Origin: Heteronotia binoei
Lineage: Eukaryota
Direction of reading: 5' to 3'
DNA: 64,000 nucleotides
Assembly (NCBI RefSeq): GCF_032191835.1
Contig: NC_083227.1
Span: forward strand, 40,982,001-41,046,000
A program made the position numbers and the translations under genes. The notes below the pieces were generated by a model that was not told the origin of the DNA, did no database searches, and saw only the letters and a list, made by a program, of their open reading frames with translations. The stretch's first letter is position 1, and every line of letters begins with the position of its first letter. This document shows, in pieces, positions 16,987 through 64,000 of the stretch.

Positions 16987-18385
16987 GGTTGTTTGACTTC
17001 TGTACCTAATGTGGAACATTTAAACATCGGGTTGGACATTTTTGTGGTGCTTTATGCTCCAGTATTGCGATATTGTAACTTTAAGAGATCCTTTATCGCT
17101 TTGAGAGATATGCTGTGTTTGTTATATAAATAAAAGCAGCTATTTGGTTTATGCATGGTGGTTTCTTTATTACTGTTCCAGTAATTTCTTTTTGTCCCAC
17201 CCTTGAGGATGAAACAAATATTCCATGAAAAATGCATTCAGTGCTCAGAGGAATGTGCCATCATGTTTTCCGAGAACACAAATTAGGTGGTTTAATACCG
17301 TAATGACACAATTGGGCATATATAAGATAGCTACACCCTAAAAACTGAATCAGTTTGGGTTGGAGTGAAAGGCGCTTTGGAAAGAATCTTAGAAATTGTG
17401 TTTTATCTTTTAAATTTAAGATAGATGGGATAAGAGGTGACATGTATGTTTTTTAATTTCTAGTTCCATTGGTATGCTAGCATTTTTTCATGATTATGGT
17501 CCTTTCATCATTTCAAGAGTGATTAGACTGCTTTTTCAAGACCTGCTGCCTGCTTGCCATCTTCAGACAAGAGGTCTGTCCAGCTCATCACCTCATAGAA
17601 AAGAGCAACTGCCTTCCCTTTGCAAGGTAGTTTTAACAAACCTGTGTCTTCTCCCCCTTGCCATCACTCCTGCCTGCCCTTGATCCAGTCACCCAGGTCG
17701 CATCCCAAAAGCTCTCCTGGAAGGTATTCTGGGAACTCTCCAGAAATTGTCTAGAGACTTCCTGGCACCAAATTCCTTAGTTGGTTTCCTACTAGGTTTA
17801 TTTGCATATGTATAGATGTAATCAATCAGGCCTTTGAACTCCTTGCCACTTCCAACCCACCCATCCCCACTTTTAAAGGGGAGGGGGGTTCTCCATAGTC
17901 TCCATTTGAATATAGAACAAAATAGGAGTCAAATTCACCTTTAAGACCAACAAAGTTTTATTCAGAATGTAAGCTTTTGTGTGCTAGCTACATGGATCTA
18001 TCTACTGTTTGAATATAGGTAACAGTTGTGCTTCTTCACAGTTGTTATTGCCAGGGGTTGCTTTGTAGAAAAAAAGGTGGTGGAGCTCATCCAGGGATCA
18101 TTATGCAGCTGCACCTACTATTCAATGGACAAGGTGGGAAGGAGGAGGTGGAACTGTCAGAAAGGTTCAGGAGCTGTGCTCCTGTGAGCTCCCGCTGAAT
18201 TTAAGACCTGGTTATTGCACCTATCAGCAGCCTTTGATGCTGTGGGCCATGACTTTCTGTCATGTTGTCTTGAGGCAGAGGAAGGAATTAAGGAAAGTGC
18301 TTTGGACTGGTTTAAAAATCATGCCTTATGGATCATACTCTGTTTTTTCTTTCTTCTGCATTCACTGTGGAAAGTGTTGGGCAAG

Positions 18386-18996
18386 TGTGGCAGGAATACC
18401 CCTGCAATTGGTGGTTGGTCAGTGAACAGACTAGGTCAGAGGCTCAATCAGGAAAAACGGCAGTTTATTGAAAAAACATGCACGGGCTTCAGACGGACTC
18501 ACGTCCCAAAAATTCTGAAAGCCTCGATATGAGGCATAACACAAGCTTTTATACCATACAGTATCGATACATCAGCCCAATTATCATTTTCACAGGAACA
18601 AGGTGGGGGCTGGGTAGGTACTTTTTGGTACTTTCCATACATGGCATTATTATGTGCAATCTCATGCTTAGCCGCAATTTCCTTTAAAGTAAACATGTTA
18701 TTCTCAGCATCTTTGGGTTTCTCCAGGACTTTTTTCGGGGTGCAAAATACATAATGCTCTGTTCCAGTAAGCATTAGCAAATCCACATTCCCCTTTCACT
18801 GAACTATGCTCTACAGGCAACCACACTTCGCTTGCTTGGGACATCTTTGGCAAGAGCGCAGGGGGAAACCACTTCTTTTTCCCACAGAGAGATTTCACAT
18901 AATGCGCATATTTCAAACTTTGTCCCTTTTACCCTCTTTTATCAAGCTCCCTGGCCTAATCAATTTAATTGCTATTTATTTTGGCACTGCTATACA
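18386..18996. mobile_element. About 610-bp insertion with TG...CA ends (possible solo LTR)
   Basis: Absent from the paralogous site at about 56365-56375 (gtgttgggc|gtgtacccatg is contiguous there); TSD not clean. Confidence 0.45.
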
Positions 18997-18999
18997 AGT

Positions 19000-20560
19000 A
19001 CCCATGCCACAGCCACTATTTTCTGAAAGGGAGTCTGAAAAAATTGAGCCAAGTTGAGGTGACCAGAGATGAAGTTTTAGACCTATTGGGAAAACTAAAA
19101 AATGATAAATCTCCAGGTCCTGATGGCATACATCCAAGAGTTCTTAGGGAACTCAAATGAGATTGTTGATCTACTAACCCATATATGAAACATCACTAAA
19201 TTCAGCTACTTTACTAAAAGAATGGAAAGTAGCAAAACTTACACTGATTTTTTTTAAAAGGAGTCCAGGTGAGAAATTATAGGCCAGTTAACCTAGTGTC
19301 TGTCCCAGGGAAATTACTAGAAATCGTAATCAAAGATTACTAGGGACATAGAGGAACATAGCTTGAGGGAAAATCAACATGACTTTTGCAAAGGGAAGTC
19401 ATGACTCAGCAGTCATTGGATAAGAGGATAACGGATTAAATCTCTAATGGATTGAAAATTGCCTAATGACAGGTAGCAAATAATAGGAATAAATGGACAG
19501 TTCTTCCAATAGAGGAAAGTAACAGTGGGGCCGCACAAGGATCTGAACCCGGGCCAATTCTAGTCAATTTGTTCGTAAATGATCTGTAAGGAGTGAGTTG
19601 TGTAGTGGTACAGTTTGTAGATGACATAGTATTCAAGATGGTAAAAACCAAGGCTGACTTGGCTGTGATGGGCTCCAGCAGTATCTCCACAAATTGGGTA
19701 AGTTGGCAACAATGTGGCAGATGAAGTTCAGTGTTGGTAAGTGTAAGAGGATCTCAACTTCAAGAATAGGCTAGTGGGGTATGAAAAAGATCTTAGGGTT
19801 TTACAGCTCAATGAAAGTGTCAACACAGTGTGCTGCAGTGGTGAAAAAAGTAAACTCTGTGCCAGGATTGTTAGGAAAGGGACTGAAAATAAAATGATCA
19901 ATATTATAATGTCCCTATATAGATCAATGGTGCAGCCTCATTTGGAATATTGTGTATAGTTCTGGTCACTAAGTCTTGAAAAGAACTTCGCAGAGTTGGA
20001 AAAAGTACAGAAAAGGGCAACACACATTAGAGGCATGGAGCACTTTTCCTATGAAGAAATGTCGAACAGTCTGGGACTTTTCAGTTTTGAAGAGACTACT
20101 AACGAGGGACATGATAGAGGTTTATAAAATAATGCATGGAGTGGAGAGAGTTAACAAATAATTTTTTATCTTCCTCTCCCAAAATACTAGAACTTGAAGA
20201 TACCCAATGAAGTTGATGGGCAGTAGGTTCAGGATGAACAAAAAGGAAATATTTCTTTACATAGAGAATGAGTAAAATGTGGAATTCGCTGCCAGTAGAT
20301 GCAGTGACCACAAATATAGACAGCTTTTAAAGGGAATTAGACAGAATCTATCAGTAGCAACTAGCCATGGTGATTCAAGGGAACCTCCACATTCAGAGGC
20401 AATAGACCTCTGAACACCAATCTAGCAGGCAATATCAGCCTCTATGCCCTGTTATTGGATCTCCAGAGGAACTGGTTAGCTACTGTGTGAGACAGGATGC
20501 TGAACTTGATGAACCACTGATCTGATCCGGCAGGGTTGTTCTTATATGCTTATTGCTGTC
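19000..20560 (+). mobile_element. Degenerate CR1 LINE fragment
   Basis: Peptides KNDKSPGPDGIHPRVLRELK, SLYRSMVQPHLEYCV, RDMIEVYKIMHGVERV, followed by a CR1-type 3' UTR. Confidence 0.9.
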
Positions 20561-20663
20561 AGAGAGCAGTTGTCAGCAGTGTGGGACTTCCCTTGTGGGA
20601 AGGGGGGGCAACTCTAAGGCAAACTACTGAGATAAACTATGTTTTCCAAAAACACTTGTCCAC

Positions 20664-20857
20664 CAGTGTTCCCTCTAAGCTGAGTTAGTGTGAACTAGCT
20701 CACAGATTTTTAGCCTCCAGCTCACACATTTTTGTCTTAGCTCAAGAAGAATGATCCCAGAACACACTAATTTATGCAGTAGCTCAAAACTTTAATGCCA
20801 CTAGCTCACAAAGTAGAATTTTTGTTCACAGAACTCTGCAGCTTAAAGGGAACATTG
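20664..20857. mobile_element. hAT MITE (cagtgttccctcta family)
   Basis: TIRs cagtgttccc / gggaacattg; perfect 8-bp TSD ttgtccac (20656-20663 / 20858-20865). Confidence 0.9.
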
Positions 20858-21347
20858 TTGTCCACCTTTAAAAACAAAGAAAGATCAGTTTAGAATACTT
20901 AACTTCCCCTCACTTCTTTATACAACCCAAAGGCAAACTAAGGCTGTGTAAATCTGTAATTTGCATTTCCTGGGCAGAATGCATTGCATGATCTTCATTG
21001 CATCTATTTGAACCCCAAGAGTTACCAAATTCCTTGCTCCTGGCTCCACCGCAAAGTCTCCTGGCTCCACCCCCAAAGCCCCCAGATACTTCTTCAATTG
21101 GACTTGGCAACCCTAATAGATATCTGGAAGACATTTATCAAGAAACTTGCCAGGTGACCTTCACCAACTTCTCTCTCAACATATCATACAAGGGCTGTAG
21201 TGAGGATCCAATGAGGAGAAATAAACATGTGCACAGCTCTGAGCTCATTGGAGGAAGGGTGGTATAAAAATATCCTAATAGGTATGCTGGTCATGTAGCA
21301 TCTTCATGCACAGGTGATGTGATACAACCAGCACAGCCAGTTGTCAG

Positions 21348-21480
21348 GGAGAATTCTCTTTATTTGCATAATAATTAATTATAATAGAAGAAGGAAGAGT
21401 AGGAGCAGGCACTTCCGTGATCTACCCTCTTCCTTTGCACTATTATAAAAGCATCTGGAAAGCATATTTTTGCAAAGAAC
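21348..21480 (+). promoter_or_regulatory. LAAO core promoter (TATA box; C/EBP-like and octamer motifs)
   Basis: TATAAAAG 21444-21451, about 80 bp upstream of the ATG; TTGCATAA 21364-21371 overlapping ATTTGCAT 21362-21369; gggagaattct just upstream. TATA, TTGCATAA and gggagaattct are conserved in the paralogous copy. Confidence 0.7.
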
Positions 21481-21527
21481 TCACCACCGTCAAACTCCAC
21501 TGTCCAGAATCCCAAGGGTGAAGACAA

Positions 21528-21540
21528 ATGGGTATCTTCT
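21528..21540 (+). CDS. LAAO: L-amino-acid oxidase, coding exon 1 (MGIF + T, phase 1)
   Basis: ATGGGTATCTTCT|GTAAGT: 13-nt exon with a consensus donor, downstream of TATA. Phase 1 matches exon 2 (T|CG = Ser) and gives the signal peptide [20 protein letters not shown]. Identical in the duplicated copy. Same size and phase as the IL4I1 first coding exon as I recall it. Confidence 0.8.
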
Positions 21541-23256
21541 GTAAGTAATATTGTGCCAAAGAAAACATCACCAGAACTGCTAATTGCTTTTCATCTTAAA
21601 CATACAATTCAAATGTTCTATTTCACTCTACTTGCTCTTTAGAAATAGCTGCATTTTAATTGTTTTTGGCTTTTGCTTTTGGAGTTTTTTTGTTCGTTTT
21701 TCTTTTTACAAATAACCACCAAGGCCTGTGCATCCTTTGTTCAAATTTTAAAATTGAAGTTGTAGGACAAGATCTGTCTCTCTGTGCTCTGTATTATGTG
21801 CTACATGAAGTGTTGCTATTGTTACTGTCACTTGCAGGGGAGTGATTCTCAGCTAGAACTTCATTTCAGAGTGGCAGCCATGTTAATCTGTTGCAGCAAA
21901 AATAACCAGAAGTTTTGTGGTACCTGAAAAGATTAACAAAATGTATTTCAGCATCAGTTTTGGTGAGCTGCAGCCCACTTTGTCAGATATATGTTGCATG
22001 GATCTTGTCTAGGCAAGCATAAGCATATGAGTAATGGAAAAAATAAATGGAGCTCAAAGGTCCATGAAATATAGGAAAGACAGGGCAAGATGTAATTATT
22101 TGAAATTTAGATGGTATCAGGGAAAGTAGCATTTCCAAGAATCATTCCCATGCAGAGACTATTCCCAAGAATCATTTATAGTTTATTATAGTTCAAACTA
22201 GTTCATACTTATAATAGCTGAGGAAATCCAGGTCCTTGTTCAGTCCTGGGAAGAGGGGGAAGAAACTGCTGGATTCAGTTCAGCACTGGAAGTCCTTTGG
22301 CATTCTCTTTAGTTGGAAGAAGGTATTAATGGATGTCAGTTTTATTTATTATTCTTGTTAATAACTGGAATCCAATTTTTAACCAATGGGATTGAGATTC
22401 ACTCTTCTTGTTTGAGGACACATGGATGCATTACTGTAACTGATAAGGACAAATAAAATATCAAAATTCTTCTGACAATGAATGGTAGAGCTGGTTTATT
22501 AAATGGTCACATTTCTTTTAATAGGAAGATGCTTACTGTTTAAACAAAGATAAATATTTAATTGGTGAACAGTCCTAGTCTCAAAAAAATCCTCTTAATC
22601 TGAATATCTTCATCTTATTTTTTTTTTTATCAACATTCCCTACTGTAGATGTTGTTGGATTTAGTGGCATTAAGAAGGTGTACAACTGGCAAATTGATGC
22701 TTAACACAATTAACTTAAATCAGTATAACTTAAGATGTAAGGAGGGGTCTTGTAGCACTCTGAAGACTTCTGGCATAACATTTTGTGGGCTGGAGCTTCA
22801 CTTTGTCAGACATATGTTGTGGGAAATGCTGTAAAAAGAAGAGTGAAAGGTCCATGAAATACAGGAAGCACAAGAAGTGATGTGATTGTGTAAATTTCAA
22901 ATGTAAACAAGAAAGAGACAATGACCACTCACACTAGCAGTCATTGCAAGTTCCCTTGCTTTGCTATGCTACTTAAGACCTGCAATAACTAAGGAGCTCC
23001 AGATCGTGTTCAATTCTCAGAGATGGTAATCAAACTGTATGTACCTAAGCATCATCAAGTCACAATATATTTATTCCAGCAATGGGCTTTCAAGACAAGT
23101 AAGAAGTAGAGGTGGTTCACCATTTCCTTCATCTGCTGAGCCTTCTTTGGCGGTCTCCCATCCAAGTGGTTCGCTTCTGAGAGATGACAGGTTCAGGCTA
23201 TACCATGCCACCTTCCCTGCCTGTCTCAAATTTAAAAAGTAAAGATAGTCCCCTGT

Positions 23257-23445
23257 GCAAACACCAGTCATTTCCGACTCTGGGGTGACATCGCATCACA
23301 ACGTTTTCACAGCAGACTTTTAATGGGGTGGTTTGCCATTGCCTTCCCCAGTCATCTACACTACACTATCCCCCCAGCAAGCTGGGTACTCATTTTACTG
23401 AGCTTGAAAAGATGGAAGGCTGAGTTAACCTTGATCCGGCTAGGA
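23257..23445 (-). mobile_element. Sauria SINE (Squam1-like) 3' part
   Basis: Reverse complement of the ...aaggcaatggcaaaccacccc...gagtcggaaatgactggtgtttgcacagggga tail; absent from the paralogous copy near 60770. Confidence 0.8.
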
Positions 23446-25040
23446 TCTAATTCATCAGTTTCATGCTGGAAGTCTCCCTTTGAAGTCCTGTTGGTGGAGA
23501 AAAGTGAATGTTAGAATATTCTCTCATCAGTTTCTGAAAACTGCCATTTTTAATGACAGTTTGGATTTTAAAAACAATCTCTGAACATCAAAGTATCAAA
23601 CCAAAGTTCTGCAATGATGCTAACTTTTGGTTGTGTGTTTAATTTCACCTTTGCTCTAGGCAAAGCCTATGAGGAAGTCATCTCAATGGGGAATTTGTAC
23701 CAGTTCGAAGACACGTTTGTACTGAAAGTCAAGCTGCTCTTGCAAAATTCCTAGACTGTTCAATGAGGCTTGTCTGAGGAAATTTACCAGCAGGCTGACT
23801 CAGGTCCATGTGTCAAAGCTAATCTGCCTAAGGGTGTGCCCCAGCAAGTTTCAAACAAATTGATCCTTGCAGATCAGACAGCACTTGTGCAAATGTGCTA
23901 AGCTAAGGAAAAGGCAGAGCTAGGTGGCAAACCCCATGTGGAGGGAGAGTGTGCATAATCTTGAGGTATGTAGTGCTTCCCCTTTTTGAGATTCTGCATC
24001 CTATAATGTAAGTTTCGTGCAGGAAACATTTGTGTTATCTTAGTATATGGCATATCTGCCCAGCATGTGGGAATATTTGACTGGAAAAGATGTTATCCTA
24101 GGACAGTGATGGTTAACCTATGGCAGGGGTCCCCAACCCCTGGTCCGTGGCCTGTTTCCAAGTGGGTCGCGCAACTACCCCCCCCACGCAGCCTCATCTC
24201 CCCCCCCCCCTGCATAGCCTCGTCGTCCCCCATTTATACCATTTTAAGGCTGCATTTCAAATCTGCATATGAATGTCAGCATTGTTCTGACATCAAGATA
24301 TAGTGAGGGTCAACACAAGGAGCGAGTAGGACCTCAACCATAGGCTGCTATTTGGGATGACAGCCCATGTTCTTTTCAAGCTGTTGGTTTCAAGATTGAC
24401 TCCTATAAGAAAACGTAGTTTAATTTACTCTTTAATTCAGTTCTGCCCAAAGAATCTGGGTCAATTTAAGAGACAGAGCTTAATGTGTAAATAATCTTGT
24501 ATAGAAATAGACAGTTCTTTAAGCATCCTGGACACTGACCACTTAGGGCTTATAGGTCAAAAGCAGCACTTTAAATTGGTCCCAGGAATAATCCAGCAGC
24601 CAATGGTTTAAGATTGGCAGATGTGTCATCTGGTTTGCCCTGGTTTGCCCTGGTTAGCAATCAACCACCATATTTTGCATCACCCAATTTCTAGATTCTC
24701 TTCAAAGGCAGCCCCACATAAACCACATTATCTCCATCCATCCATCACAACTGTATCCCACTCTTCATCTGAGGAGTTCACAACACAGATCTCCCATCTT
24801 CCATTTGAGCTTTACAGCAATAGATTTAGATTAAGAAAGAATGGCTTGTCAAGGATACTCATAGATGAATGGGTGTGGCTCAGTGGTAGAGCATCTGCTT
24901 TTCACACAGAAGGTCCCAGGTTCAATCCCTCCCATGTCCACTTAAAATATCAGGTAACTTATGATGTAACAGACCTCCCCCTGAAGTTCTGGAGAGCTGT
25001 CACCAGTCAGAATAGACAGACTATGGTCTGAGTCAGTGGC

Positions 25041-25631
25041 TGTCATGGACTCTGTGGGTTGCTGCCTAACACTGCCACCACTCTGGATTGATGGTCTTTT
25101 GGGAAAGCCCAGAGTACCCTCCCAAGCCCAACCAAAATGCCCCTTTAAGCCGAGAAAAAAAAACCCGGACGTGATGACCAGGCAGAGAACACTAAAAATA
25201 TAAAGGTTTATTAATGCAGGGATGGGTATTTAAACAAGGCAAGGTGCTTAATAGATATAACAGTGTATAAAGGAAAATGAAAATAAACCCTAATGCAGCT
25301 ACCTGTACTTCCCCAAGCCTGTTAGTCGTCTGGGCCCACAGCCCTTTTCCCCAGACCGACTGCCCGTGACTCACTCTACCTTCTGAGTGAGGGAGCCTTC
25401 TCTCAGCCACAGACCATCCTCCCACCCTAACTCTGCCAGAGCAAAGAACAAAGTTCCACAGCCCACAAAATTATGTATCAATCCCCTCACACAATCTCTG
25501 GACACTGATTGGTTACAGCGGGTGCCAAGCATTATGGGGATTGTAGGCTGTGTCTGCTTTCTACTCCCACACTGGTCTTTAGGCCCAGGCCTTCCTAGAC
25601 CTTGTCTCCCAGTCCTTCACAGATCATGACA
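25041..25631 (-). mobile_element. Solo LTR (591 bp) in LAAO intron 1
   Basis: 7-bp TIR tgtcatg/catgaca; 5-bp TSD gtggc (25036-25040 / 25632-25636); empty site gagtcagtggccctgtgcag in the paralog at about 63561-63580. Confidence 0.92.
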
Positions 25632-25988
25632 GTGGCCCTGTGCAGATGACCCATGCACATGTTGATTCACTTTGCAGGGAAGAAGAATGAACATGAGCAC
25701 ACTGGCCCTGGCCATCATCTCAAAATGATTGCTCAATTGATTCCACAGTGCAAATGCATGGAGGAATGCAAATATGTTTGGAAAGCAGCTTCACTGATCA
25801 TGGGGGAGGGGGTTATGCACAGGCACTTCTTCCACATAGTCACACCATGAAGATGACTCAGTGTTGATGAAGAGGTCAAGGGGCAGTGAGTCCACACAAA
25901 TGGATTATCTGCACTGGTCTACAATAAGGCAGCTTTAACATAGAGAAAGTGCCACAAAGTTGTAGATGACTTATGGCCACCTGTAGAG

Positions 25989-26579
25989 CGGGGGTGTCAA
26001 ACATACTGCCTGGGGGCCGAATCAGGCCCCCAGGGAGCTCTTATCAGGCCTCCAAGAAACTGGTTGTCATCTGCTTCCTTCTGTGTAACAGCTTGCTTTG
26101 TCAGGCTTGCTCAGTCACACAGGAGCTATAGAGCAAAGCTTCTATTTTCTCCATTGGCTGAGGCTTATCCCTTGGGGAGGAAGGGAGGGAAGCAGAGCTT
26201 ACTTTGCCAGGCTCTCTCAATTGCACAGCAGAGCTACTCAGCCAAGCCTCTCTTCCTTCTATTGGTTTAGGCTCCTCCCCCTTCTGGTCCACTGGGGAAG
26301 GAAGGAAAGAGACAGGGCTTCCTTTGCCCAGTTCCCTGGATCCCATAGGAGAAGTACAAAGAAAGCACCTTTAAAACCAAGTACTAATGTTTTAAGCATG
26401 TTTTAAGTTTTTTTTAAAAAAATCTTTAATTGTGTTTGTCTGTGTCCTTTATAAAGTTTATATCTCTACTACCTAATCTTAAATAGGTACACATATAGCC
26501 TGGCCCAACATGGCCTGGCTCAACAAGGTCTCATTTATGTCAGATCTGGCTCTCATAACAAATGAGTTTGACACCCCTT
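25989..26579. mobile_element. hAT MITE (caggggtgtcaaac family)
   Basis: TIRs ggggtgtcaaac / gtttgacacccc; TSD (c)tgtagag; empty site in the paralog at about 63775-63790. Confidence 0.88.
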
Positions 26580-26589
26580 TGTAGAGTTT

Positions 26590-26730
26590 TCAAGGCAAGA
26601 GACAGAGATGGTCTGCCATTGCCTGCCTCTGTATAGCAACCTGGGACTTCCTCAGTGGTGTCCCATCCAAGTATTACGCAGCGCTGAGATCTCACAAGAT
26701 CAAACTAGTCTGGGCTATCCAGTCACGGCA
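26590..26730 (-). mobile_element. 5S-derived SINE (shared with the paralogous copy at about 63790-63930)
   Basis: Reverse 5S-like gtcccatccaagta...gagatctcacaagatc...ctgggctatccag; present in both duplicated copies, so it predates the duplication. Confidence 0.65.
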
Positions 26731-28404
26731 CAGACTTTACTATATTATCTGTTGCTGTATGTTTTTTCATCTTGCTCTCACTATATTTTGACTTACGTCA
26801 TACCATTTCTTGCATTGTGTTGTTGAAAAAAGATGCTTAAAGTAATTTCCAAAGCTGTTTAAGTCTTTATTGTACGATTGCAGGACACAGCAAAAGCAGA
26901 ATTTCAGTAGCAGGGTGGTTATTGTCCCAAATACATTTGTTTATTTATTTCATTCAATTTATAGTCCCCCAGATAAGCAGGCATAACTAGATTTTAAGCC
27001 TGGAATTTTCCTGTAAAACCAACTTCTTAATATCTTTTATCTGCAGCTGGCACTGGTTGATTCAGATTAGTCAGTTCTAATTCCAAGGTCACTTACTCTT
27101 TATTTTTGCAGTCATGGCACATTCTGCCTAGCCTACTTGACCACCATTTAAAATGTGTCTCCACACTGGTCTTCCACAGTTTAATATGTCATCTTTAAAA
27201 GTGATGTCCTTTCAGACTTCTGAAATCATACTGCATTGCTTATTAAGTGTAAGCCAAAATGCCCTCAAAAGAGGTTAGGGAATTAACAGGTGGGCACCTA
27301 TGGCGTAAAAGTGAGAAAGGTGGACTATGAATAGCATAGTAAAATAAATGAATAAATAGCAAAATTAACAAAATGCATACCCCACCTTTCTGCCCTTACA
27401 GACACCAAAGCAGCTAACAAATTAAAACATATGTAATAAAATCACATTTTTATAATATTCACAAACAACCAAATAAATAACTTTGAACACAGGTTTCCTA
27501 CCCCTTCCTAGTCCAACAACCACTGTGCAATAGAGGCTCATAAATTATTGCAGTCTGGTCTGAATGTAGCTAATGAATGAATAATTCCTGCTAGAATCTC
27601 CCTTTCCAGGCCAGGGTGCAGCTGAAGATGCAGCCCAGTCTGATACAGCATGTTTTTGGCTGTCAGTCGCACCTAAACATCAAGGAACAAAAAAACAGGG
27701 TGGAGAAAACATGTAAAATAGTAATGATATATGGTGAGATTAATAGCTCAATCCAAGATTACAACAACCTAAACAAGCAACTTGCTTAAGGTCCTTGGCA
27801 TGATTTCACTACCTTTAGTCAGTTTTGATGATATCTGTGCTTGTGAATGCCTGATGGATTTTGCAACGCAGATCTTTTCCAAGGAGAAGCTGATGTTCTT
27901 GAATTGTATCTGCCACTCTTGGATAGGAAGCATGAAGGATCAATTCATTCAGTGCAATTCTCAGGTCAAGGACAACCATCTACCAGATGTTGGCTTACTG
28001 CCATCAGGCCTGCTTGCTTGCACATTCATTCACTGCTTTTGAAGAATTTATTGTTGGTGAATGCTACTTTGCCCTGATCGGCCTTGACTATTACAGAGGA
28101 GCCAAAACAGGGGCAATGTCCAGTCCACTGCATCTGATGCTGGAGTGTAGTGACATCTAACTCCATATGTACAAAATTGTAAATTCTTGTAGACCATTTT
28201 TACATAGAGACTTACTGTGACCAGAGAGGGCAGGAGCCAGCAGCCAGAGCTGTTAGAGGATCATCCGCTGACACTAGCTCCACCACTGCCTCACCTAGAT
28301 GAGAAGGGCTGTCAACCTCCAGGTGGGGCCTGAGATCTCCCAGCATTGCAAGTGATCTCCAGTATACATAGATTATTTCCCTTAGAGAAAATGGTTGTAT
28401 TGGA

Positions 28405-28855
28405 GCCAGTTTGGTGTAGTGGCTAAGTGTGTGGACTCTTATCTGGGAGAACCAGGTTTGATTCCCCACTCCTCCACTTGCAGCTGCTGGAATGGCCTTG
28501 GGTCAGCCGTAGCTCTTATGGGAGTTGTTCTTGAAAGGGCAGCTGCTGTAAGAGCTCTCTCAGCCCAACCTAGGTGTCTGTTGTGGGGGGGGGGTGAGAT
28601 AAAGGATATTGTGACCACTCTGAGTCTCTGATTCAGAGTATAGGCAGGATTTAAATCCAATATGGCCTTGGGTCAGCCATAGCTCTGGCAGAAGTTGTCC
28701 TTGAAAGGGCAGCTGCTGTGAGAGCCCTCTCCAGCCCCACCCACCTCACAGGGTGTTTGTTGTAAGGGAGGAAGGTAAAGGAGATTGTGAGCCGCTATGA
28801 GACTCTTCGGAGTGGAGGGCGGGATATAAATCCAATATCTTCTTCTTCTTCTTCA
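28405..28855 (+). mobile_element. Tandem or nested Squam3-like SINEs
   Basis: tRNA-like head at about 28407, two copies of the ggccttgggtcagcc...gtccttgaaagggcagctgct body, (tct)n tail at about 28840-28855. Confidence 0.8.
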
Positions 28856-28879
28856 TTGGAGGGTGGACTCTACGGTATT

Positions 28880-29085
28880 GGGAGGGTGTGGCTCAATGGC
28901 AGAGCATCTGCTTAATATGCAGAAGGTCCTAGGTTCAATCCCCAGCATCTTCAGCTAAAAGGATCAGTTAGTAGGGGATGTGAAAGATCTCTTTCTGAGA
29001 CCCTGGAGAGCTGCTGCCAGTCTGAGTAAACAATATGTTGATGGACCGATGGTCTGATTCAGCAGAAGTCAGCTTCATGTGTACG
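28880..29085 (+). mobile_element. Squam2-like SINE
   Basis: gtggctcaatggcagagcatctgctt head; ctggagagctgctgccagtctgagtaaacaat body. Confidence 0.8.
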
Positions 29086-29609
29086 TGAATATTGTCTCTC
29101 TGTAACTGCAATTATCTGAACGAAATTTATGACCCCCCCCCCCAGCTGTTATAAATGTTAACTAGCTTAGCGGAATTAGTGAATGGTTTCTGTATTTTTT
29201 CCAGGTTAGAGCTGAAATTTATGTAATTATACATCACTGTGTATTTCCTACATTTTGTGGCCGTCACCCTTCTTTTCCCTCTGAAAATTCCTACATTAAA
29301 TAACTTCATAATGAGGATCCATTCACAGCATATGAAGAATTGGGCCCTCATCCACAAAAGCTTCTGTGGCAATAACATTTTGGCTCTTCCACACAGGTGT
29401 TTCGCTCAGCCCTGGCTCTCAGACTGCCTGTGGTGGTTCTTTCCAAGCAGACACACAATGCTGGCTTGCAATCAATCTCTGCTTGAGTGTTTTAGGGAAC
29501 AGGGACTGGGAAACTCCTTGTTTTGCCTGAGAGAAACATGCTGACATTCAGAGTTTGATGGTGTTGAGCAAAATGGACTGATCAAATGATTGCTTGTAAG
29601 GTAACTTTA

Positions 29610-29815
29610 GCCCTGACCTGGATAGCCCAGGCTAGCCCATTCTCATCTGATCCCGACTACTAAGCAGGGTCAGCCCTGGTTAGAATTTGGATGAGAGACC
29701 ACCAAGGAATACCAGGGTCTATGCAGAGGCAGGCAATGGCAAACCACCTCTGAACATCTCTTGCCTTGAAAACCCCAGAGGATCAACGTATGTTGACTGT
29801 GATTTGACGGTATTT
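29610..29815 (+). mobile_element. 5S-derived SINE
   Basis: gccctgacctggatagcccaggctagccc...aagcagggtcagccctggttag...gagaccaccaaggaatacc, then ggcaatggcaaaccacctctg. Confidence 0.8.
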
Positions 29816-30913
29816 TCTACCACCCCCAAGGTAGCATTATAGATCTATGGCATTCATTACTGCAGGATGTGGAGAGAGCTAGTGGCTTAGAGTAGGTTTC
29901 TGATTGGCCATAACAGCAAACAGAACTCTCATCAATTAGAGGCACTATGTCTCTGAACATGAGATTGTGGGGAGGAACAGAAGAAGACTGCTTTTTGACT
30001 TCCTGCCTTGTTTGTGGGCTTTTCATTTGGCTAGGAAACCAGGTGGCAGACTTTGGTTCTGATCCAGCAGAGCTATTTGGTTCTGCAGGAAGTCCTTGGA
30101 CCACAGGGGGTAGAGGGATCTCTCTGGTTCCTAAAGTCTAGCAGCATTTGGTCAATAGAAGGGATGCGCGTCTCTCAGAATCTGGGAAAACAGAAGGTGA
30201 AAAAGGGTTTCACACTCTGATAAAGAAACAGCCTGGCTATTTTGTGGATGCTGGAATTCTGAACATAGGTGAAGCAGGCACTGACCCACCATTAATTTTT
30301 TGTTGTTGTTAAAACCAGATATGCTGCTGTTCTAAAAACAAAATCTTGTTCTTCAAACGGATTTTAGTAGCATTTGAAACACAATTCTACTGTGGGATGA
30401 ACTTCTGCTCTAGGTGAGGCAGTCTACCCTCTGGCCCAAGTAGGGATGCCTGCCTCCAGGTGGGGCCTGGGAATCCCCCAGAATTACAACTCCTGTCCAG
30501 ATGACAGAGATCAGTTCCCCTGGAGAAAATGAGTGCTTTTCAGGTGGACTCCATTATATTGTACCCCACTGAGGTCCCTGTCCTTCCCAGGCTCCACCCT
30601 CAAGTCCTAGGAGCTTCCCAACCTGGATTTGGCAACCCTACTCCCCACATCCCCTACTGGTGAGCTGGCAACCCTAGCCACATGGGACTCTGAGAACAGC
30701 TTTTGCCTTTCCTTCTCCCCCCTTCCCCAGGGTACAGCCACAGCAGCCAAAAGCCACTGTCCAGCCCTCCCAGGCGCTCATCTGTGTGTCTCTGTGGAAA
30801 GATTAACACTCTGCTGCTTTGTTCCCCAGATATGTTTTAACCTCTCTCTTGTCAGACCAGGAGGATTAAAAAAGAGTGACATTTTTATCTCTCTTCCAGA
30901 GAACACTTTAAAG

Positions 30914-31554: not shown

Positions 31555-31628
31555 CTTTAAAGGATAGGAGGATTATCATAATCTGCCCTTAATGATTACG
31601 GAAATGCTTCAGGTTAATTCATTTTGGA

Positions 31629-31923
31629 AGAGCCCCACGGCACAGAGTGGTAAAGCTGCAGTACTGCAGTCCAAACTCTGCTCATGACTGAGTTTGATCC
31701 TGGTGGAAGCTGGCTTCAGGTAGCCGGCTCATGGTTGACTCAGCCTTCCATCCTTCTGAGGTCAGTAAAATGAGTACCCAGCTTGCTTGGGGGGTGGGGT
31801 GGTAAAGTGTAAATGACTGGACAAGACAATGGCAAACCACTCTGTAAAAAAGTCTGCCGTGAAAACGTTAAAGCAATGTCATCCCAGAGTCAGAAATGAC
31901 TGGTGTTTGCACAGGGGTTACCT
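31629..31923 (+). mobile_element. Full-length Sauria SINE
   Basis: 15-bp TSD ttaattcattttgga (31614-31628 / 31924-31938); ggttgactcagccttccatcc...caatggcaaaccac...gactggtgtttgcacagggg. Confidence 0.9.
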
Positions 31924-49085: not shown

Positions 49086-49179
49086 TTCTAGAGTATACCA
49101 GTGGGGGGAAATATTGTGAAGAAGCCCCTCTGTCTTTCTGTTTCCAACCTGTTTATTCAACTTTGCTTTTGTCTTGCAG

Positions 49180-49981: not shown

Positions 49982-51469
49982 CTTTTACAACAGACTGGCA
50001 AGGGCATAACTATCCATTAAGAACTTCAACCCAAGACAAATCAAGATTTCCTATGGCATTCACAGATGGCAAAGAAACAAAATGTGATTCAAAGCAAGCA
50101 ATCTTTTGCCAAAGGTGATCCTTCTTTGCAACAGAATGAGAACTTCTCAGCTCCACTCAGAAAGAAATTCAGAACACTCTCATATTTCTGTAACACAGCA
50201 ATGAAATGGTCTTTGTAAAAATTGTATGTGTGCATTATCAGTTCTTTCCTCTATCTGATGTGGAAGGATTATCATAAGTGTGATGCCCCCATTGGCGAGT
50301 GAGCTGGGAAAGGTCAGTAAAGTGCAAATGGATCACATGAATGTATGCACAAACCTTTCCCTACAGTCTTCTTCAGTTACTTATAAGAGTCGATATGGCT
50401 GGGTCCAGACTGGCAGCTTCAGGTACCTGGGCTGGCTCAAAATGGAGTGGCCACATGCTCCTGCACGAGTCACCCATATCCCGCATGGGAGGCACTTTGG
50501 CATGGTCAGACAGCTGTTGCGAACCACCTCCTCAGCTCAGTTCGGGTTTCTTTTTCCCTCCATTCATTTTAGTGGTCATGAACACAAGTGCCCAAGTGCC
50601 TATGCGCTTGGAAGCAATATTGTTGTTTTTTCAAAAGCCAGGTTCACACTGTGCATGTGATTTGCTTGCACAAATCTGTGTCCAGGCACTGGAGAGGCAA
50701 ATTACGTGCGGCAGAGAAATTTGCTACCACTTCGTAAGTGGTAGCTTCTTGGGCCACCTAAAAGGCTCTGGAGGACAGAGTGAGTGTGGGGGCAGGACAA
50801 GAGGCAGATGTGCGCATTTGGATTTGATTTTTAAATCCATTTGCAAGCCATCCCTGTGTCGGCTTATATGCCCTGTCTGGACTCAGCCCATGTCTTGCAT
50901 GAGAAAAAAAAAAATAAAACCACAATGTCAAGGTCCTACAAACACACAGTGGTTATTTTGGCTGCTTGGCCAATAGATGAAACCTTGCTGTCTTACTATA
51001 GATGCAGGTGTGATTGGCAGGTTCCTTTTCGAGCATGAAAGACAGCTAGAGAATTATCTCCTGCTATTTGCTGTAATTCACTGATGGAGGGAGAAAACAG
51101 GGTTTCTGCCCTGACAGGCAGCCAATTCCTTTCTCTGCTTCTGTTTTCTTTCCTGATTTCTTTTCAGTGGCCTTGGAGATCCATCTCAATCCCAATTTTC
51201 CACCTCCAGATCTTCATCTCTTTCTGAAGACACCTCTCCTAGTAGTCCCTGTCTTTCTGTTCCTGATGAAACTCCTGCTGGAAAGGAGAGACCTCAGAAA
51301 GAAAGGCCACTTAGGACAGCCTGTCATTACCAAATGGTAGTTTCCCAGTGCCGAATAAGAATTGCAGGTCTTGAAAAGCCTCTATAAAACTACAAGTACA
51401 GGTGGGGAATAGGGGACAAGGGAGAAAGGGGGGGACAGAGGGACCAGACTGGCAGATCAAAGAGGAACT

Positions 51470-51690
51470 GCCACATATGAACATATAAAGCTGCCTTATA
51501 CTGACTCAGACTCTTGGTCCATCAATGTCAGTATTGTCTACACAGACTGGCAGTGGCTCTCCAGGTTATCAAACTGAGGTTTTTCACACCTATTTGCCTG
51601 GACCCTTTTTAGTTGGAGATGCTGGGGATTGAACCTGGGACCTTCTGCTTATCAAGCAGATGCTCTATCACTGAGCCACTGTCCCTCCCT
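51470..51690 (-). mobile_element. Squam2-like SINE
   Basis: Reverse complement of the 10605..10812 family (aagctgccttatactgactcag...gggattgaacctgggaccttctgctt). Confidence 0.8.
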
Positions 51691-52816
51691 CCACTGGACA
51701 CGCCTCTTGCTACAAGGGCTTTAGGGCACCCCAAGCATGGCACCCCATGCTCCCAAATTTTGTCCCCTGGGGACAGCAAATGAGAAGTCAATATTTTTTG
51801 CCTCTTTATGATTGCCCCAGAAACAGAAAGACATACATCTATCCATACAAAATTTGAAAGATTAAATGCAATGTCTTAGATTCTTTGCTAAAGAAGGACT
51901 CCAAACGATACTGAAATGCGACAACATATTCCCCCTCATTAAAAAGGAGAGAGCCTTTGGTTCCACTGGATTTCCCAATGCTTTGACTGCATGTCAATTA
52001 TGGTTACTGTATCTCCAAAAAAAGATATGGCAAAGCTAGAAAAACTGCAGTAGAAAGCAACCACTGGGCCATTTCCCACATGGATTCTTTACTCAACCTT
52101 GAGTCGAGTCCAATAGCACTGTAGAAGCCAACAGGATTTTGGAGATACAACCTTTTGAGTAAGCTCCCTTGGTTAGATCTGACACAGGGAGGTTTGACTC
52201 TCAAAAGATCATACTCCCCAAATCTTGTTCCTTTCTAGGGTGCTGTTGGACTCAAAACTCGCTGTTCTGCTGCTACCCTCTGGAAACTTACTGAGCCTTG
52301 ACTTTCTTACAGCCATGCTGTTGTCAGGAGCATCCACACAATGTCCTCCTCTATTTATCAGCTTCCATGTCTTCCTCCACTTTGCTGCTATCTTTTCCAA
52401 ACTAATATTTGGGGAAAGATCACAGTCAAAGACTGCTCATACGCCATGTGGCCGGAAAGGATTTTGCAGGTGTCCCCTCCATCGATGCCATTTTCCTTAC
52501 CCCCACCCCCCACAGCCTCCTCATTGCCCCCAAACACACAAATAATGGAGGGCTTTCCAGGCTTTTGTTTTTTAAAACAGGAATTGCTAGACTGAGATTT
52601 ATTATAACAATTTACTGCCACAATCTGCTAGTTCCCAGATAAATGTTTTAATAAATAAATACTAACCTGTCTGGCATGATTTCATTCGTTTCTTTCTTGC
52701 TGGATTAACCCCCTCCCCTTCATTAATGTCTAATAGTGCACCTCTAAGGAAGGGTTACACTGGGTTGCCCAGTTTGGGAAGATTTGGGTACACTTGAAGA
52801 TTTGGGTACAGTGCCT

Positions 52817-53834: not shown

Positions 53835-55105
53835 ACTTCAAATAAACGACTGGCTACATTGATGGTGTCGTTAGAAAAGATTCAGATTCTTCCAAATAAA
53901 CGATAAAGAGGATATAGAATTTCAGACGGTCTGGGATGCTTATAAAGCAGTAATGAGAGGAATATTGATTACATTGAATAACAAAGATAAGAGGGCAAAA
54001 GAAAAACAGATGTTGGACATTCAAAATGAAATAAAGAAAAAAAAGGGGAACTGAGAAAAATGCCAGGGGAAAAGAAAATTATAAGGGAGATTACAATATT
54101 AAAAACGCAAATGAGACATTTGTTAAATAAAAAACTTCAATGGAATCTGAAAAGATTGCAGCAGAAATCTTTCGAGGGAGCAAACAAACCCGGAAAATAT
54201 TTGGCCTGGCAACTGAAGAAAAAGAGAGAAAGTAAAATTATTAATAAAATTGTGGTGGATGGAAGAGAAGAATAAAAAGAGAATTCTTTAAGTATTATGC
54301 CAAGTTATTTAAAGGTGTTAAAATAAGGGGGGGAAAGATGGATGAGTACTTACAAAAGATAAAAATAGCACCCTTAGCAGAAAATATGCTAAAAGTTTTG
54401 AACGATCCAATTGAAAAAATAGAAATTGAAGCAGCAATTAATACAATAAAAAATGGAAAAGCACCTGGGCCAGATGGATATACAGCTAAATTTTTTAAAA
54501 CCCTCAAAGAGGAGTTAATCCCGAAACTTCAGAAATTGATGAATATGATAAGAACAAAAGGGAAAATACCAAATACATGGGAGGAAGCTGTTATTTTGTT
54601 GATTCCAAAGGAAGACAGAGATGTTATGAACGTAAAAAATTATAGACCAATTTCATTATTAAATAATGACTATAAAATATATACAAGAATCTTGGCAGAA
54701 CAGTTTAAACAATATTTGATAAATTTTATAAAGGAAGATCAAGCGGGGTTTCTTCCCAAAAGGCAAATAAGAGACAATATCAGAACTGTTGTAAATATTG
54801 TAGAATATTATGAAAGACATCCAGAAAAGGAAGTAGCATTATTCTTTGCAGACGCAGAGAAAGCATTTGACAATTTAAATTGGGATTTTATGTTTGCAGT
54901 AATGGAGAAAATGGAGCTGGGAGAAAGCTTTATGATAAAAGCAATATATACTGAACAATGTGCAAGGCTATGTATAAATGCTGATCTTACAGAAGACATG
55001 ATAATTAGTAAAGGTACAAGACAAGGTTGTCCACTTTCCCCGCTGTTGTTTATAATGACTCTTGAAATATTACTGATGCAAATTCAAGAAGATAAAGAAA
55101 TAGAA
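53835..55105 (+). mobile_element. L1-clade LINE ORF2 fragment (reverse transcriptase N-terminal half)
   Basis: KAPGPDGYTAKFFK...NYRPISLLNNDYKI...QAGFLPKRQIRDNIR...DAEKAFD...GTRQGCPLSPLLF. Confidence 0.93.
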
Positions 55106-55560
55106 AGTAGTGACCATGAGATTTTGGAATTTACAGTCTTAGGGAAGGGAAAAGCTATACGTAGCCAGACTTACAGGTTGGACTTCAGAAAGGCAAACTT
55201 TGATAAATTTAGAACTATGCTGGGTAAAATCCCATGGACAGAAATACTTAGGAAGGGGTTCAGGAGGTCTGGGAGTTTCTTAAAAGCGAAATACTGAAAG
55301 CGCAATCACAGACAATTCCTACGAGAAAAAAAAATGGAAAAAGCCTAAAAAAGCCGAAGTGGCTCCATAAACAGCTCTCTAAAGACTTGAGAAATAAAAA
55401 AGACTCCTTTAGGAACTGGAAGAAGGGCCTTATAACCAAGGATGAATTTAAACAAATCATCAGTGCTTGTAGAGAAAAAGTTAGGAAAGCTAAAGCTCAG
55501 TATGACTTAGGCTGGCCAAAGATGCTAAAAACAACAAAAAAAGGTTCTTTTCTTATGTTC
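55106..55560 (+). mobile_element. CR1 LINE internal fragment (endonuclease C-terminus and linker)
   Basis: SDHEILEFTVL...SQTYRLDFRKANFDKFRTMLGKIPW and KPKWLHKQL...CREKVRKAKAQ peptides typical of CR1 ORF2. Confidence 0.85.
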
Positions 55561-59206: not shown

Positions 59207-59340
59207 GGAGAATTCTGTCTGTTTGCATAATAATTAATTATAATAGGAGAAGGAAGAATAGGAGTGCAGGCGCGTCCTCGATTTACTCTCTTCCTTTGTA
59301 CTATTATAAAAACATCTGGAGAGCACGACATTGCAAAGTA
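59207..59340 (+). promoter_or_regulatory. Core promoter of a second LAAO paralog
   Basis: TATAAAA 59305-59311; TTGCATAA 59223-59230; gggagaattct upstream; collinear with the promoter at 21348..21480. Confidence 0.7.
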
Positions 59341-59388: not shown

Positions 59389-59401
59389 ATGGGTATCTTC
59401 T
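59389..59401 (+). CDS. LAAO: Coding exon 1 of a second LAAO paralog (rest of gene predicted beyond the window)
   Basis: ATGGGTATCTTCT|GTAAGT, identical to 21528..21540, at an offset of 37,861 bp. Downstream exons are not in the window, so function cannot be confirmed. Confidence 0.7.
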
Positions 59402-61904: not shown

Positions 61905-62431
61905 TAGGGTTGCCAATCCCCAGGTGGGGGCAGGGGATCCCCCGGTTTGGAGGCCCTCCCCCCGCTTCAGGGTCATCAGAAAGCGGGGGGAGGGGAGGGA
62001 AATGTCTGCTGGGAACTCTGTTATTCCCTATGGAGATTTATTCCCATAGGAAATCATGGAGAATTGATCCATAGGTATCTGGGGCTCTGGGGGGGCTGTT
62101 GTTTGGGGTAGAGGCACCAAATTTTCAGTATAGCATCTAGTGCCTCTCCCCAAAATACCCTCCAAGTTTCAAAACGATTGGACCAGGGGGTCCAGTTCTA
62201 TGAGCCCCAAAAGAAGGTGCCCCTATCCTTCATTATCCTATGGAAGGAAGAAATTGAAAAGGTGTGCCATCCCTTTAAATGTGATGGCCAGAACTCCCTT
62301 TGGAGTTCAATTATGCTTGTCACAGCCTTGCTCCTGGCTCCGCCCCAGTGTCTCCTGGCTCCACCACCAAAGTCTCCTGGCCCCACCCCCAAAGTCCCCA
62401 GATATTTCTTGAATTGGACTTGGCAACACTA
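61905..62431 (+). mobile_element. hAT MITE (TAGGGTTGCC family)
   Basis: TIRs tagggttgcca / tggcaacacta; perfect 8-bp TSD ggtatgtg (61897-61904 / 62432-62439). Confidence 0.92.
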
Positions 62432-62639
62432 GGTATGTGACATTATATTTCAGAGCACAGATTCAGTAACCAAGGCACTCATAATGTGTTTGGACCACCC
62501 TGACTGTGGATGACTTGGCAAAGTATGATAAATTTGAATGGGGGACATAAAACACTTAACAGGAACACATTTTTTTGTAGCAGGCTAATCACCCCAAGTC
62601 CCTGATTAGTCCAAGTCTCATACTATCATATCTCCATAC

Positions 62640-62808
62640 AGGAGTGAAATTCTAGCAGGAGCTCCTTTGCATATTAGACCACACACCCCTGATGTAGCCA
62701 ATTCTCCAAGATCTTACAAAAAAAGAGCCTTGTAAGTTCTTGGAAGATTGGCTACAACAGGGGTGTGTGGCCAAATATGCAAAGGAGCTCCTGCTAGAAT
62801 TCCACCCA
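62640..62808. mobile_element. Palindromic MITE
   Basis: gaaattctagcaggagctcctttgcata ... tatgcaaaggagctcctgctagaattc inverted repeat. Confidence 0.8.
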
Positions 62809-64000
62809 TGTCTACGTATGAATTCTATCATTGTTATGACATCAAGATATAGTGAGGGTCAACAAGAGGAGTGAGTGGGACCTCAACAATAGGCTGCTAT
62901 TTGGAATAATAGCCCATGTTTTTTTCAAGATATTGGTTGACCATTGCCTCCTATAAGACAATTTATGGTTTTCTTCAGTTCTGGCTGAAGAATCTGGGTC
63001 AATTTATGAGACAGAGCTTAATATGCAAATAATTTTGTATGGAAATTGACAGTCCTTTAAGCATCCTGGACACCAACCACTTAGGGGGTTAAAGGTCAAA
63101 AGCAGCACTTTAAATTGGTCCCAGAAATAATCCAGCAGCCAATGACATTAACATTAGTCTAAGACTGGCAAATGTGTCATTTGACTTGCCCATATTTTGC
63201 ATCACCCACAATTTCTAGATTCTCTTCAAAGGCAGCCCCACATAAACCACATTATTATCCATCCATCACAACCATATCCCATTCTTCATCAGAGGAGTTC
63301 ACAGCACAGTTCTTCCATCCTCCATTTGATCCTTACAACAGAAGATTAAATTAGGTTAAACTGAGGGAATGACTGTTCAAGGATACCCATAGATTATTGG
63401 GTGTGGCTCAGTGGTAGAGCATCTGCTTTTCACACAGAAGGTCCCAGGTTCAATCCTTCCTATGTCTACTTAAAAGATCAGGTAGCTAATGATGTAACAA
63501 ACCTCCCCCTGAAGTTCTGGGGAGCTCCCACCAGTCAAAATAGACAACAGACTATGGGTTGAGTCAGTGGCCCTGTGCAGGGAAGAAGAATGAACATGAA
63601 CACACTAGCTCTGTCCCCCACCTCCAAGTGGTAATGAACACACTAGCCCTGTCCCCCACCTCAGTTGGTTCCACAGTGCAAATGCATGGAGGAATGCAAA
63701 CATGTTTGGAAAGCAGCTTCACTGATAATTGGGGGGGGGGGGGATGCACACCAAGTTGCAGATGATTTATGGCCACCCTGTAGAGTTTTCATGGCAAGAG
63801 ACAAAGGTGGCCTGCTATTGCCTGCCTCTGTGTGGAAACCTGGGGCTTCCTTGATGGTGTCCCATCCAAGTATTAAACAGGGTTGAGATCTCACAAGATC
63901 CAACTAGTCTGGGCTATCCAGGTCAAGGCACAGACTTTACTATATTACTTGTTGCTGTGGGTTTTTTTATCTTGGTCTCACTATGTTTTGACTTATGTCA

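Follow-up and report, generated by a model that had tools for sequence, protein, structure and literature searches.

A single old tandem duplication has left two intact, adjacent genes for L-amino-acid oxidases (LAAOs) with predicted secretion at this locus, which form an ordinary pair and not a large toxin-family array. The window—the whole stretch of 64,000 nucleotides analysed here—corresponds to Heteronotia binoei CM063329.1:40,982,001-41,046,000. Both genes, in the following gene A and gene B, are annotated by NCBI on CM063329.1 as "L-amino-acid oxidase-like [Heteronotia binoei]". Public sequence past the window end was added, which is identical to the window over an overlap of 14,612 bp and brings the extended sequence to 91.65 kb in total; coordinates marked "ext" continue the window numbering. 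A second version of this record, which differs from the window in its letters, was left out. The flanks covered in this way are 2.97 kb before duplication unit 1 and 4.8 kb after unit 2. As a whole, the locus is very probably best explained by one segmental tandem duplication with two units, which kept both LAAO genes intact and originated in the Heteronotia lineage.

Self-BLAST of the window and the extended sequence yields a unique collinear chain of 33 same-strand blocks (~13 kb aligned, 73-91% BLAST identity), and the start codons of genes A and B are spaced by exactly 37,861 bp. Both observations bear out the proposal of an earlier note on this DNA that an LAAO gene has been duplicated in tandem in a gecko. 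The upstream blocks listed there as mapping in order are indeed all single-copy matches (2975 to 51914, 7362 to 52813, 7524 to 53179, 18221 to 56246, and 21116 to 58979), and the chain continues via intron 1 up to the window end (26580 to 63779). Unit 1 (2975..51884, plus strand, ~48.9 kb), whose edges are those of the chain, comprises gene A together with 18.5 kb of DNA before it and 1.9 kb on its 3' side. Unit 2 occupies the window from 51914 to 64000 (plus strand) and ends at ~ext 86831, ~22.8 kb beyond the window end, which gives it a total length of ~34.9 kb. They are separated by the junction (51885..51913), whose 29 bp have no match at either end of a unit. To its left, the sequence corresponds to that with which unit 2 finishes (ext 86831), and to its right, to that with which unit 1 starts (2975). 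The locus hence shows what defines a tandem segmental duplication: two collinear same-strand copies, one novel junction at which a 3' end abuts a 5' start, and unique outer flanks.

The neighbourhood of the junction retains a trace of the adjacent gene. At 51087..51317 on the minus strand, unit 1 bears what is left of the last exon of a C2H2 zinc-finger gene, namely its first 69 codons (tblastn, 55% identity, E = 3e-14). This relic was carried into the unit by the duplication, and its zinc-finger part is deleted. The intact last exon is found at ext 85300-86469 (minus strand), and the zinc-finger gene is the right neighbour of the pair. Sequence just outside both unit ends is single-copy, and no repeats that would indicate TE-mediated unequal crossing-over were found at these ends. 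Repeat-mediated recombination is rejected on account of these single-copy flanks and of the 29-bp junction that matches neither end; a non-homologous or replication-based event might instead have generated the duplication. A single such event would have copied ~35-49 kb—the whole venom-type LAAO gene, the ~18 kb upstream of it, and 3' flanking DNA that extends into the last intron of the neighbouring zinc-finger gene—and would have resulted in two head-to-tail units meeting at 51885-51913 of the window. Afterwards, the units would have diverged by ~15%, each acquiring its own insertions and deletions. Copy-specific indels of 0.4-7 kb are numerous, and unit 2 bears a specific insertion of a LINE reverse-transcriptase ORF fragment (54338..55297, plus strand; Pfam RVT_1, E = 3e-26) that has no counterpart in unit 1. 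For an open reading frame in the left flank (2138-2749), no product is on record.

Gene A is complete, with seven coding exons on the plus strand that lead from the ATG at 21528 to the stop codon at 49981 and encode 515 amino acids. Exon 1 (21528..21540) contributes merely the ATG and 10 further nucleotides, ending in phase 1 at a GTAAGT donor. Exon 2 (35826..36040) encodes the end of the putative signal peptide and the GAGIAG FAD dinucleotide-binding motif, and is followed by exons 3 (37902..38014), 4 (39513..39714), 5 (42757..42825), and 6 (46529..46662); exon 7 with the stop codon (49180..49981) covers the C-terminal half of the enzyme and matches solved snake LAAO structures with E = 1e-89. 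Gene B had been foreseen as a second paralog starting at 59.3 kb with its exon 2 located 10-15 kb past 59.4 kb. In the extended sequence, it is complete and intact: coding exon 1 (59389..59401, plus strand) consists of the same 13 nucleotides and GTAAGT donor as in gene A, exon 2 follows 12 kb beyond exon 1, and the six remaining exons are all outside the window, 7.4-17.7 kb beyond its end. Exon lengths are identical to those of gene A, and the product again has 515 residues. Exact spliced models of both genes use canonical sites throughout except for one GC donor at exon 4 of gene B, and both reading frames are open over 1,548 nt. Upstream of each ATG, by 87 nt, a TATA-like box is conserved in both copies (21441..21459 for gene A and 59302..59320 for gene B, both plus strand), with 0 chance matches expected; these boxes may act as promoter elements. 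An assembly gap of 163 N (46138..46300) falls into the fifth intron of gene A at a distance of 229 nt from exon 6, within a 1,382-bp A-specific stretch to which only 20 bp correspond in copy B. On both sides of this gap, the blocks are collinear with copy B and unchanged in orientation, and splicing the coding sequence across it gives exactly the 515-aa protein of the annotation. The gap breaks nothing in gene A.

On the protein level, the Amino_oxidase domain (PF01593) spans the whole product of either gene, and the GXGXXG dinucleotide-binding motif for FAD at residues 58-63 reads GAGIAG in A and GAGMAG in B. The equivalents of R90, R322, K326, Y372, and G464/W465 (Calloselasma numbering) are kept in both copies, among which we take R90, K326, Y372, and G464-W465 to be the substrate-carboxylate and catalytic residues, following the structure literature on Calloselasma rhodostoma LAAO. 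In the alignment, R108, K343, Y390, and G482-W483 are found not only in A and B but in every gecko included. All four cysteines, i.e., both disulfide pairs, are retained in the two proteins, and the hydrophobic N terminus of the gecko LAAO aligns to the precursor leader of 5Z2G. The equivalent of H223 is not conserved (T in A, G in B), a position that also varies among snake and lizard LAAOs. The products of both genes are most likely secreted FAD enzymes, by which L-amino acids would be oxidised with release of keto acids, ammonia, and H2O2.

Between A and B, nucleotide identity of the coding sequences is 90.8% and amino-acid identity 85.9%, with 143 coding sites that tell the paralogs apart, and the non-coding DNA has diverged by a K2P distance of 0.15 over 11 kb aligned. 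The overall dN/dS of 0.39-0.55 climbs to ~1 in codons 181-270, and derived amino-acid changes are symmetric, with 27 in A and 33 in B. With domain boundaries that we presume from the Calloselasma LAAO structure literature, the amino-acid differences amount to 6% in the FAD domain, 16% in the substrate-binding domain, and 19% in the helical domain. Both genes thus appear to be under purifying selection, and the concentration of differences in the substrate-binding and helical domains may translate into different preferred amino acids.

Could the second copy be an assembly artefact—an uncollapsed haplotype or a false duplication? A gap is present within unit 1, which would fit such a case, and the sequencing runs retrieved for the junction had a word share of only 0.04. 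However, haplotypes would be ~99% identical, whereas the copies differ by 9% in coding and ~15% in non-coding sequence, and they bear the copy-specific indels and the LINE fragment described above in units of unequal length (48.9 versus 34.9 kb). The artefact is effectively refuted by this divergence and these insertions and is next to impossible, in agreement with the earlier note, which had held a mis-assembled haplotype to be unlikely. It is also distinctly unlikely that only one copy is functional and the other a silent or decaying duplicate that has so far escaped disabling mutations. The dN/dS of ~1 in codons 181-270 and the GC donor in gene B would be compatible with decay, and a search of sequencing runs with the last exon of gene A turned up no RNA run, but both 1,548-nt frames are still open although neutral sites have accumulated ~0.15-0.19 substitutions each, usable splice sites are present throughout, and the catalytic residues and cysteines are kept in both copies, in addition to an overall dN/dS below 1 and the symmetry of the amino-acid changes. 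That the pair belongs to a larger array—at least three tandem LAAO units, with extra copies to the left of the window or to the right of unit 2—is highly unlikely. In its favour, the upstream blocks at 3-8 kb have counterparts between the two genes, and other squamates (Podarcis, Erythrolamprus) have at least three LAAO-like proteins; these blocks are, however, the 5' part of the duplicated unit itself. The homologous sequence is bounded by 2975 on the left and ext 86831 on the right, with a single junction joining these two ends. In the left flank (1-2974), nothing matches the 3' flank of either gene, the 4.8 kb of right flank give only scattered non-collinear repeat matches, and the right neighbour of unit 2 is the zinc-finger gene rather than a further LAAO. 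By tblastn, no extra LAAO exon was found in the 91.65 kb, including both flanks, and among the best 120 matches only two LAAO-like proteins are from H. binoei. The terms "array" and "cluster", under which the locus had been described before, are hence not supported for these two units with one junction, and neither is the further copy suspected to the left, where the stretch 1-2974 bears no LAAO exon and no flank homology.

The age of the duplication was assessed by comparison with other geckos. The trees pair gene A with gene B as sisters, with support of 100/93 for protein, 97/97 for coding DNA, and 100/100 for non-coding DNA; the last of these trees uses an alignment anchored on copy A that may inflate the closeness of A and B. 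AU tests reject the groupings A+Gekko, B+Gekko, and A with the first Paroedura copy (A+Pp1, p = 8e-14). When Gekko is included, a quartet count in the A-anchored projection gives 49:21:28 (tree 100/100), and a MAFFT-based count is weak with 36:28:19 for A+B, from which a short A+B stem follows. The stem lengths of A+B (0.02) and of the Paroedura pair Pp1+Pp2 (0.017) are indeed short relative to the terminal branches. For the Heteronotia and Paroedura pairs, informative non-coding sites support within-species grouping over the alternatives by 75:24:17. Positional orthology, with A equal to Pp1 and B to Pp2, is rejected by these site counts and the AU tests. Gekko kuhli and Eublepharis bear one LAAO copy each within the gene ± 10 kb.

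Alternatively, the duplication might be ancestral to Gekkonidae and common to Heteronotia and Paroedura, with an early whole-unit gene conversion (concerted evolution) creating the within-species likeness. Paroedura picta shows the same head-to-tail layout with a similar spacer of ~9 kb, both stems are short, and the K2P distance of the Paroedura pair (0.29) equals the Heteronotia-Paroedura divergence (0.27-0.31). On the other hand, within-species grouping extends alike over promoter, introns, 3' flank, and exons, with trees and site counts in agreement, and the positional-orthology pattern shows no excess. A zinc-finger relic in the spacer of Paroedura would have pointed to a common junction, but none was found there; the single copies of Gekko kuhli and Eublepharis likewise speak against a shared origin, which is rather unlikely. 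The trees and AU tests instead indicate separate origins for the pairs of Heteronotia and Paroedura, and the duplication would have occurred in the Heteronotia lineage shortly after the split from the Gekko lineage, being nearly as old as that split. Tentatively, one might go further: independent tandem duplications of the venom-type LAAO locus may have taken place in two or more gekkonid lineages, among them Heteronotia and Paroedura, with the Heteronotia copies retained for tens of millions of years and their changes concentrated in the substrate funnel and pocket (positions 241, 392, and 448). If true, this would imply repeated selection for two secreted oxidases that differ in amino-acid preference or tissue—an innate defence without venom.

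Compared with the secreted LAAOs of snake venoms and other vertebrates (PDB 1F8R from Calloselasma rhodostoma, 5Z2G, 5TS5, and 3KVE), the products of genes A and B match the solved snake structures over their full length with E = 1e-185 to 1e-194. They have in common with these enzymes the FAD motif, the equivalents of R90/K326/Y372/G464-W465, two disulfides, and an N-glycosylation motif, to which an N-terminal signal peptide, putative in the gecko, may be added. Differences from these enzymes concern the equivalents of H223, as given above, and of I430, where A has Y and B has F. The gecko genes fall into a squamate clade that includes the venom enzymes (100/100); however, they belong to its lizard sub-clade, the sister of the snake clade, and hence lie outside the snake venom LAAOs by tree position.

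The Heteronotia pair has a parallel in that of Paroedura picta, likewise head-to-tail at the same locus, with copies 27.4 kb apart. The Heteronotia junction lies inside the neighbouring zinc-finger gene, an arrangement of which Paroedura shows no trace. In the leopard gecko, laao-a, a possible counterpart of A and B, is reported to be transcribed in all three tissues sampled and was taken to have a housekeeping or body role rather than one in venom (Hargreaves et al., bioRxiv 10.1101/006031). This is a different species, and Eublepharis shows a single gene within ± 10 kb. The multi-copy state of LAAO elsewhere in squamates was already known, as was the annotation of both genes, and with two copies annotated beforehand the pair alone changes little. 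LAAO-family genes in non-venomous squamates number four in Anolis, five in Boa, and six in Python (PMC8975721, Table 1). With several such genes on record, the gecko pair, which the earlier note had proposed as a non-venom case of toxin-family amplification, is nothing special, and the defensive role in skin, gland, or egg put forward there is hypothetical. Its value rather lies in a cleanly resolved example, with unit ends and junction mapped, of a venom-used gene family that duplicates in a harmless lizard, too. Podarcis and Erythrolamprus with several LAAO-like proteins and the garter snake Thamnophis with two paralogs (PMC6110522) are multi-copy like Heteronotia. The example of the gecko pair supports the view of LAAO duplication as a general squamate habit rather than a venom-specific event.

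[quoted passage not shown] Both proteins are encoded on one 173-Mb chromosome record, at 41,003,528-41,031,981 (gene A, P0001) and 41,041,389-41,063,650 (gene B, P0002) of GCA_032191835.1 CM063329.1, and both genes are already present in the public annotation. The window accordingly spans CM063329.1:40,982,001-41,046,000 on the plus strand. A literature search found no paper on the LAAO locus in Heteronotia. The fetched locus L001, which equals the window letter for letter across a 14,612-bp overlap, extends the view to 91,650 bp; positions past the window end continue its numbering and are marked ext.

An exhaustive splice-boundary search, required to reproduce the annotated proteins exactly, returned a single solution per gene, both on the plus strand. 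Gene A comprises exons at 21528-21540, 35826-36040, 37902-38014, 39513-39714, 42757-42825, 46529-46662, and 49180-49981; gene B those at 59389-59401 and ext 71355-71569, 74801-74913, 75788-75989, 76669-76737, 78909-79042, and 80849-81650. The exon lengths of 13, 215, 113, 202, 69, 134, and 802 nt do not differ between them, and exon 2 of gene B lies 12.0 kb past 59.4 kb, within the 10-15 kb that the earlier note had predicted. The 13-nt coding exon 1 with its GTAAGT donor is the same in both copies, at a spacing of exactly 37,861 bp as had been noted, and a conserved TATA-like box sits 87 nt upstream of each ATG. Splice sites follow AG...GT throughout, with the exception of a GC donor downstream of gene B exon 4 (L001 26602-26603, ext 75990-75991), where gene A has GT. 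Gene A has an assembly gap of 163 N in its intron 5 (46138-46300), 229 nt before exon 6 and within a 1,382-bp stretch missing from copy B. The blocks flanking it (44774-44937 and 46320-46733) map to copy B with order and orientation kept, and splicing of the adjacent exons 5 and 6 keeps the reading frame.

Self-BLAST recovers every repeat block proposed from the sequence alone (2975 to 51914, 7362 to 52813, 7524 to 53179, 18221 to 56246, and 21116 to 58979), followed by an almost unbroken chain through intron 1 up to the window end; each block is a single-copy match, and strand and order are kept throughout. The 3' flank of gene A (49982-51884) is homologous to that of gene B, which continues to ext 86831, and from 51914 onward the homology is to the sequence from 2975 onward. 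Since these homologies are collinear beyond the genes and switch once—within the 29 bp at 51885-51913—the locus is one two-unit tandem duplication, with unit 1 at 2975-51884 (48.9 kb) and unit 2 from 51914 to ext 86831 (34.9 kb). The units differ in size through insertions and deletions of 0.4-10 kb found in one copy only, including the fragment of a LINE reverse transcriptase at 54338-55297 (Pfam RVT_1, E = 3e-26). On its right, the unit ends inside the final intron of a C2H2 zinc-finger gene on the minus strand; the large last exon of this gene is intact at ext 85300-86469 (L001 35912-37081). At 51317-51087, on the minus strand, unit 1 retains a pseudo-exon relic that covers the exon's first 69 codons (55% identity, E = 3e-14). 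Compared with unit 2, unit 1 lacks about 4.1 kb in which the zinc-finger array lies; the exon fragment was brought into unit 1 by the duplication and the remainder was deleted there. The sequences immediately outside both unit ends are single-copy and, hence, give no evidence for repeat-mediated unequal crossing-over; a non-homologous or replication-based event might have produced the duplication.

Several further elements lie in and around the units. A 204-aa ORF at 2138-2752 (plus strand), overlapping another at 1973-2704 (minus strand), lies 223 bp to the left of unit 1; it has no Pfam match, and no called gene on record corresponds to its product. No copy of it occurs near 51.9 kb, so the ORF did not belong to the segment that was duplicated. 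The window has an interspersed repeat, roughly 500 bp long, in four copies that occur in both orientations and share 80-87% identity (244-732, 11721-12223, 15014-15536, and 61905-62433); an 80-bp piece of it at 21037-21115 stands immediately before gene A's conserved promoter block. Intron 6 of gene A (46800-47065), the inter-gene spacer (52947-53143), and intron 5 of gene B (ext 76925-77120) share a short element whose internal tandem repetition has a period of about 82 bp.

The earlier note had read the locus as an array, probably with another copy to the left. A left-hand unit would require positions 1-2974 to match the 3' flanks of the genes; they show no such match, and the upstream blocks belong to unit 1 itself. 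On the right, ext 86832-91650 shows no collinear match to the unit starts—only short, scattered, out-of-order repeat matches—and tblastn (E <= 10) finds no additional LAAO exon across the 91,650-bp view; the best 120 homologues likewise include only two H. binoei proteins. The array and the left-hand copy are not supported, the real tandem duplicate with an intact second gene stands, and the defensive role that the note proposed is putative. That the second copy might be a mis-assembled haplotype had been judged unlikely, and we agree: 143 of the 1,548 coding sites differ between the copies (90.8% identity), giving 73 amino-acid differences, and the two units agree at 86.5% of 11,004 aligned non-coding sites (K2P 0.15). 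Haplotypes would be far closer, which rules out such an artefact.

A protein tree built from 37 tetrapod LAAOs joins A and B as sisters (100/93), nested in a gecko clade within a lizard clade, which is sister to the snake clade with the venom enzymes. Paroedura picta bears a head-to-tail LAAO pair, Pp1 and Pp2, 27.4 kb apart start to start (loci L003 and L004 on CM110978.1:14,098,706-14,165,504), whose proteins are sisters in the same tree (93/93). Pp1 and Pp2 share about 78-82% protein identity, and their K2P of 0.29 is on par with the Heteronotia-Paroedura divergence. When the four copies are aligned over promoter, introns, and 3' flank, the informative non-coding sites split 75:24:17, the first count being for A,B | Pp1,Pp2 and the others for the two other pairings. 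A six-taxon DNA tree, its alignment anchored on copy A, supports A+B with 100/100 (non-coding) and 97/97 (coding) and Pp1+Pp2 with 97/97 and 100/99, and the groupings A+Gekko, B+Gekko, and A+Pp1 are rejected by AU tests. A MAFFT quartet with Gekko kuhli, made independently of that alignment, gives only 36:28:19. The K2P distances agree with a short A+B stem, as A-B (0.17-0.21) is close to Heteronotia-Gekko (0.17-0.19; Heteronotia-Paroedura, 0.26-0.31). Gekko kuhli and Eublepharis macularius each have one gene and one promoter homologue within the gene +/- 10 kb. An ancestral duplication common to both Heteronotia and Paroedura, homogenised by early unit-wide gene conversion, is improbable. Trees, AU tests, site counts, and distances together point to a duplication that arose in the Heteronotia lineage and is nearly as old as its split from Gekko, in relative terms. 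In Gekko kuhli, a promoter and exon 1 homologue (L006 3415-4133) precedes by about 6 kb the start annotated for the 467-aa protein; hence, this model probably lacks its first exon and N-terminus.

Both proteins align over their full length to solved LAAOs (E = 1e-185 to 1e-194). This alignment, together with a multi-species one, shows that they keep the GXGXXG motif, the equivalents of R90, R322, K326, Y372, and G464-W465, the NCS glycosylation motif, a hydrophobic leader, and the two disulfide pairs. Differences between A and B affect 6% of residues in the FAD domain, 16% in the substrate-binding domain, and 19% in the helical domain, with domain limits following the Calloselasma structure paper. 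Three of them line the pocket—241 (T in A, G in B; H223 equivalent), 392 (N in A, I in B), and 448 (Y in A, F in B; I430 equivalent)—at positions that vary in other squamates as well. Overall dN/dS is 0.39 (NG86) or 0.55 (YN00), with sliding windows at about 1 over codons 181-270 and 0.15-0.3 around the FAD-binding parts. Polarised with five other gecko sequences, 27 derived changes fall in A and 33 in B; hence, neither copy is running away. The best-supported reading is that A and B would be two working secreted oxidases, possibly with differing substrate preferences; we infer activity, secretion, and the difference in specificity alike from the sequences.

LAAO-family genes are also multiple in other non-venomous squamates, with four in Anolis, five in Boa, and six in Python (PMC8975721, Table 1), and two LAAO paralogs are known from the garter snake (PMC6110522). 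In the leopard gecko, a laao-a transcript is reported from all sampled tissues, which was read as a body role and not a venom one (bioRxiv 10.1101/006031). The Heteronotia locus itself is confirmed as a genuine and ancient tandem duplication in two copies, each with an intact gene.
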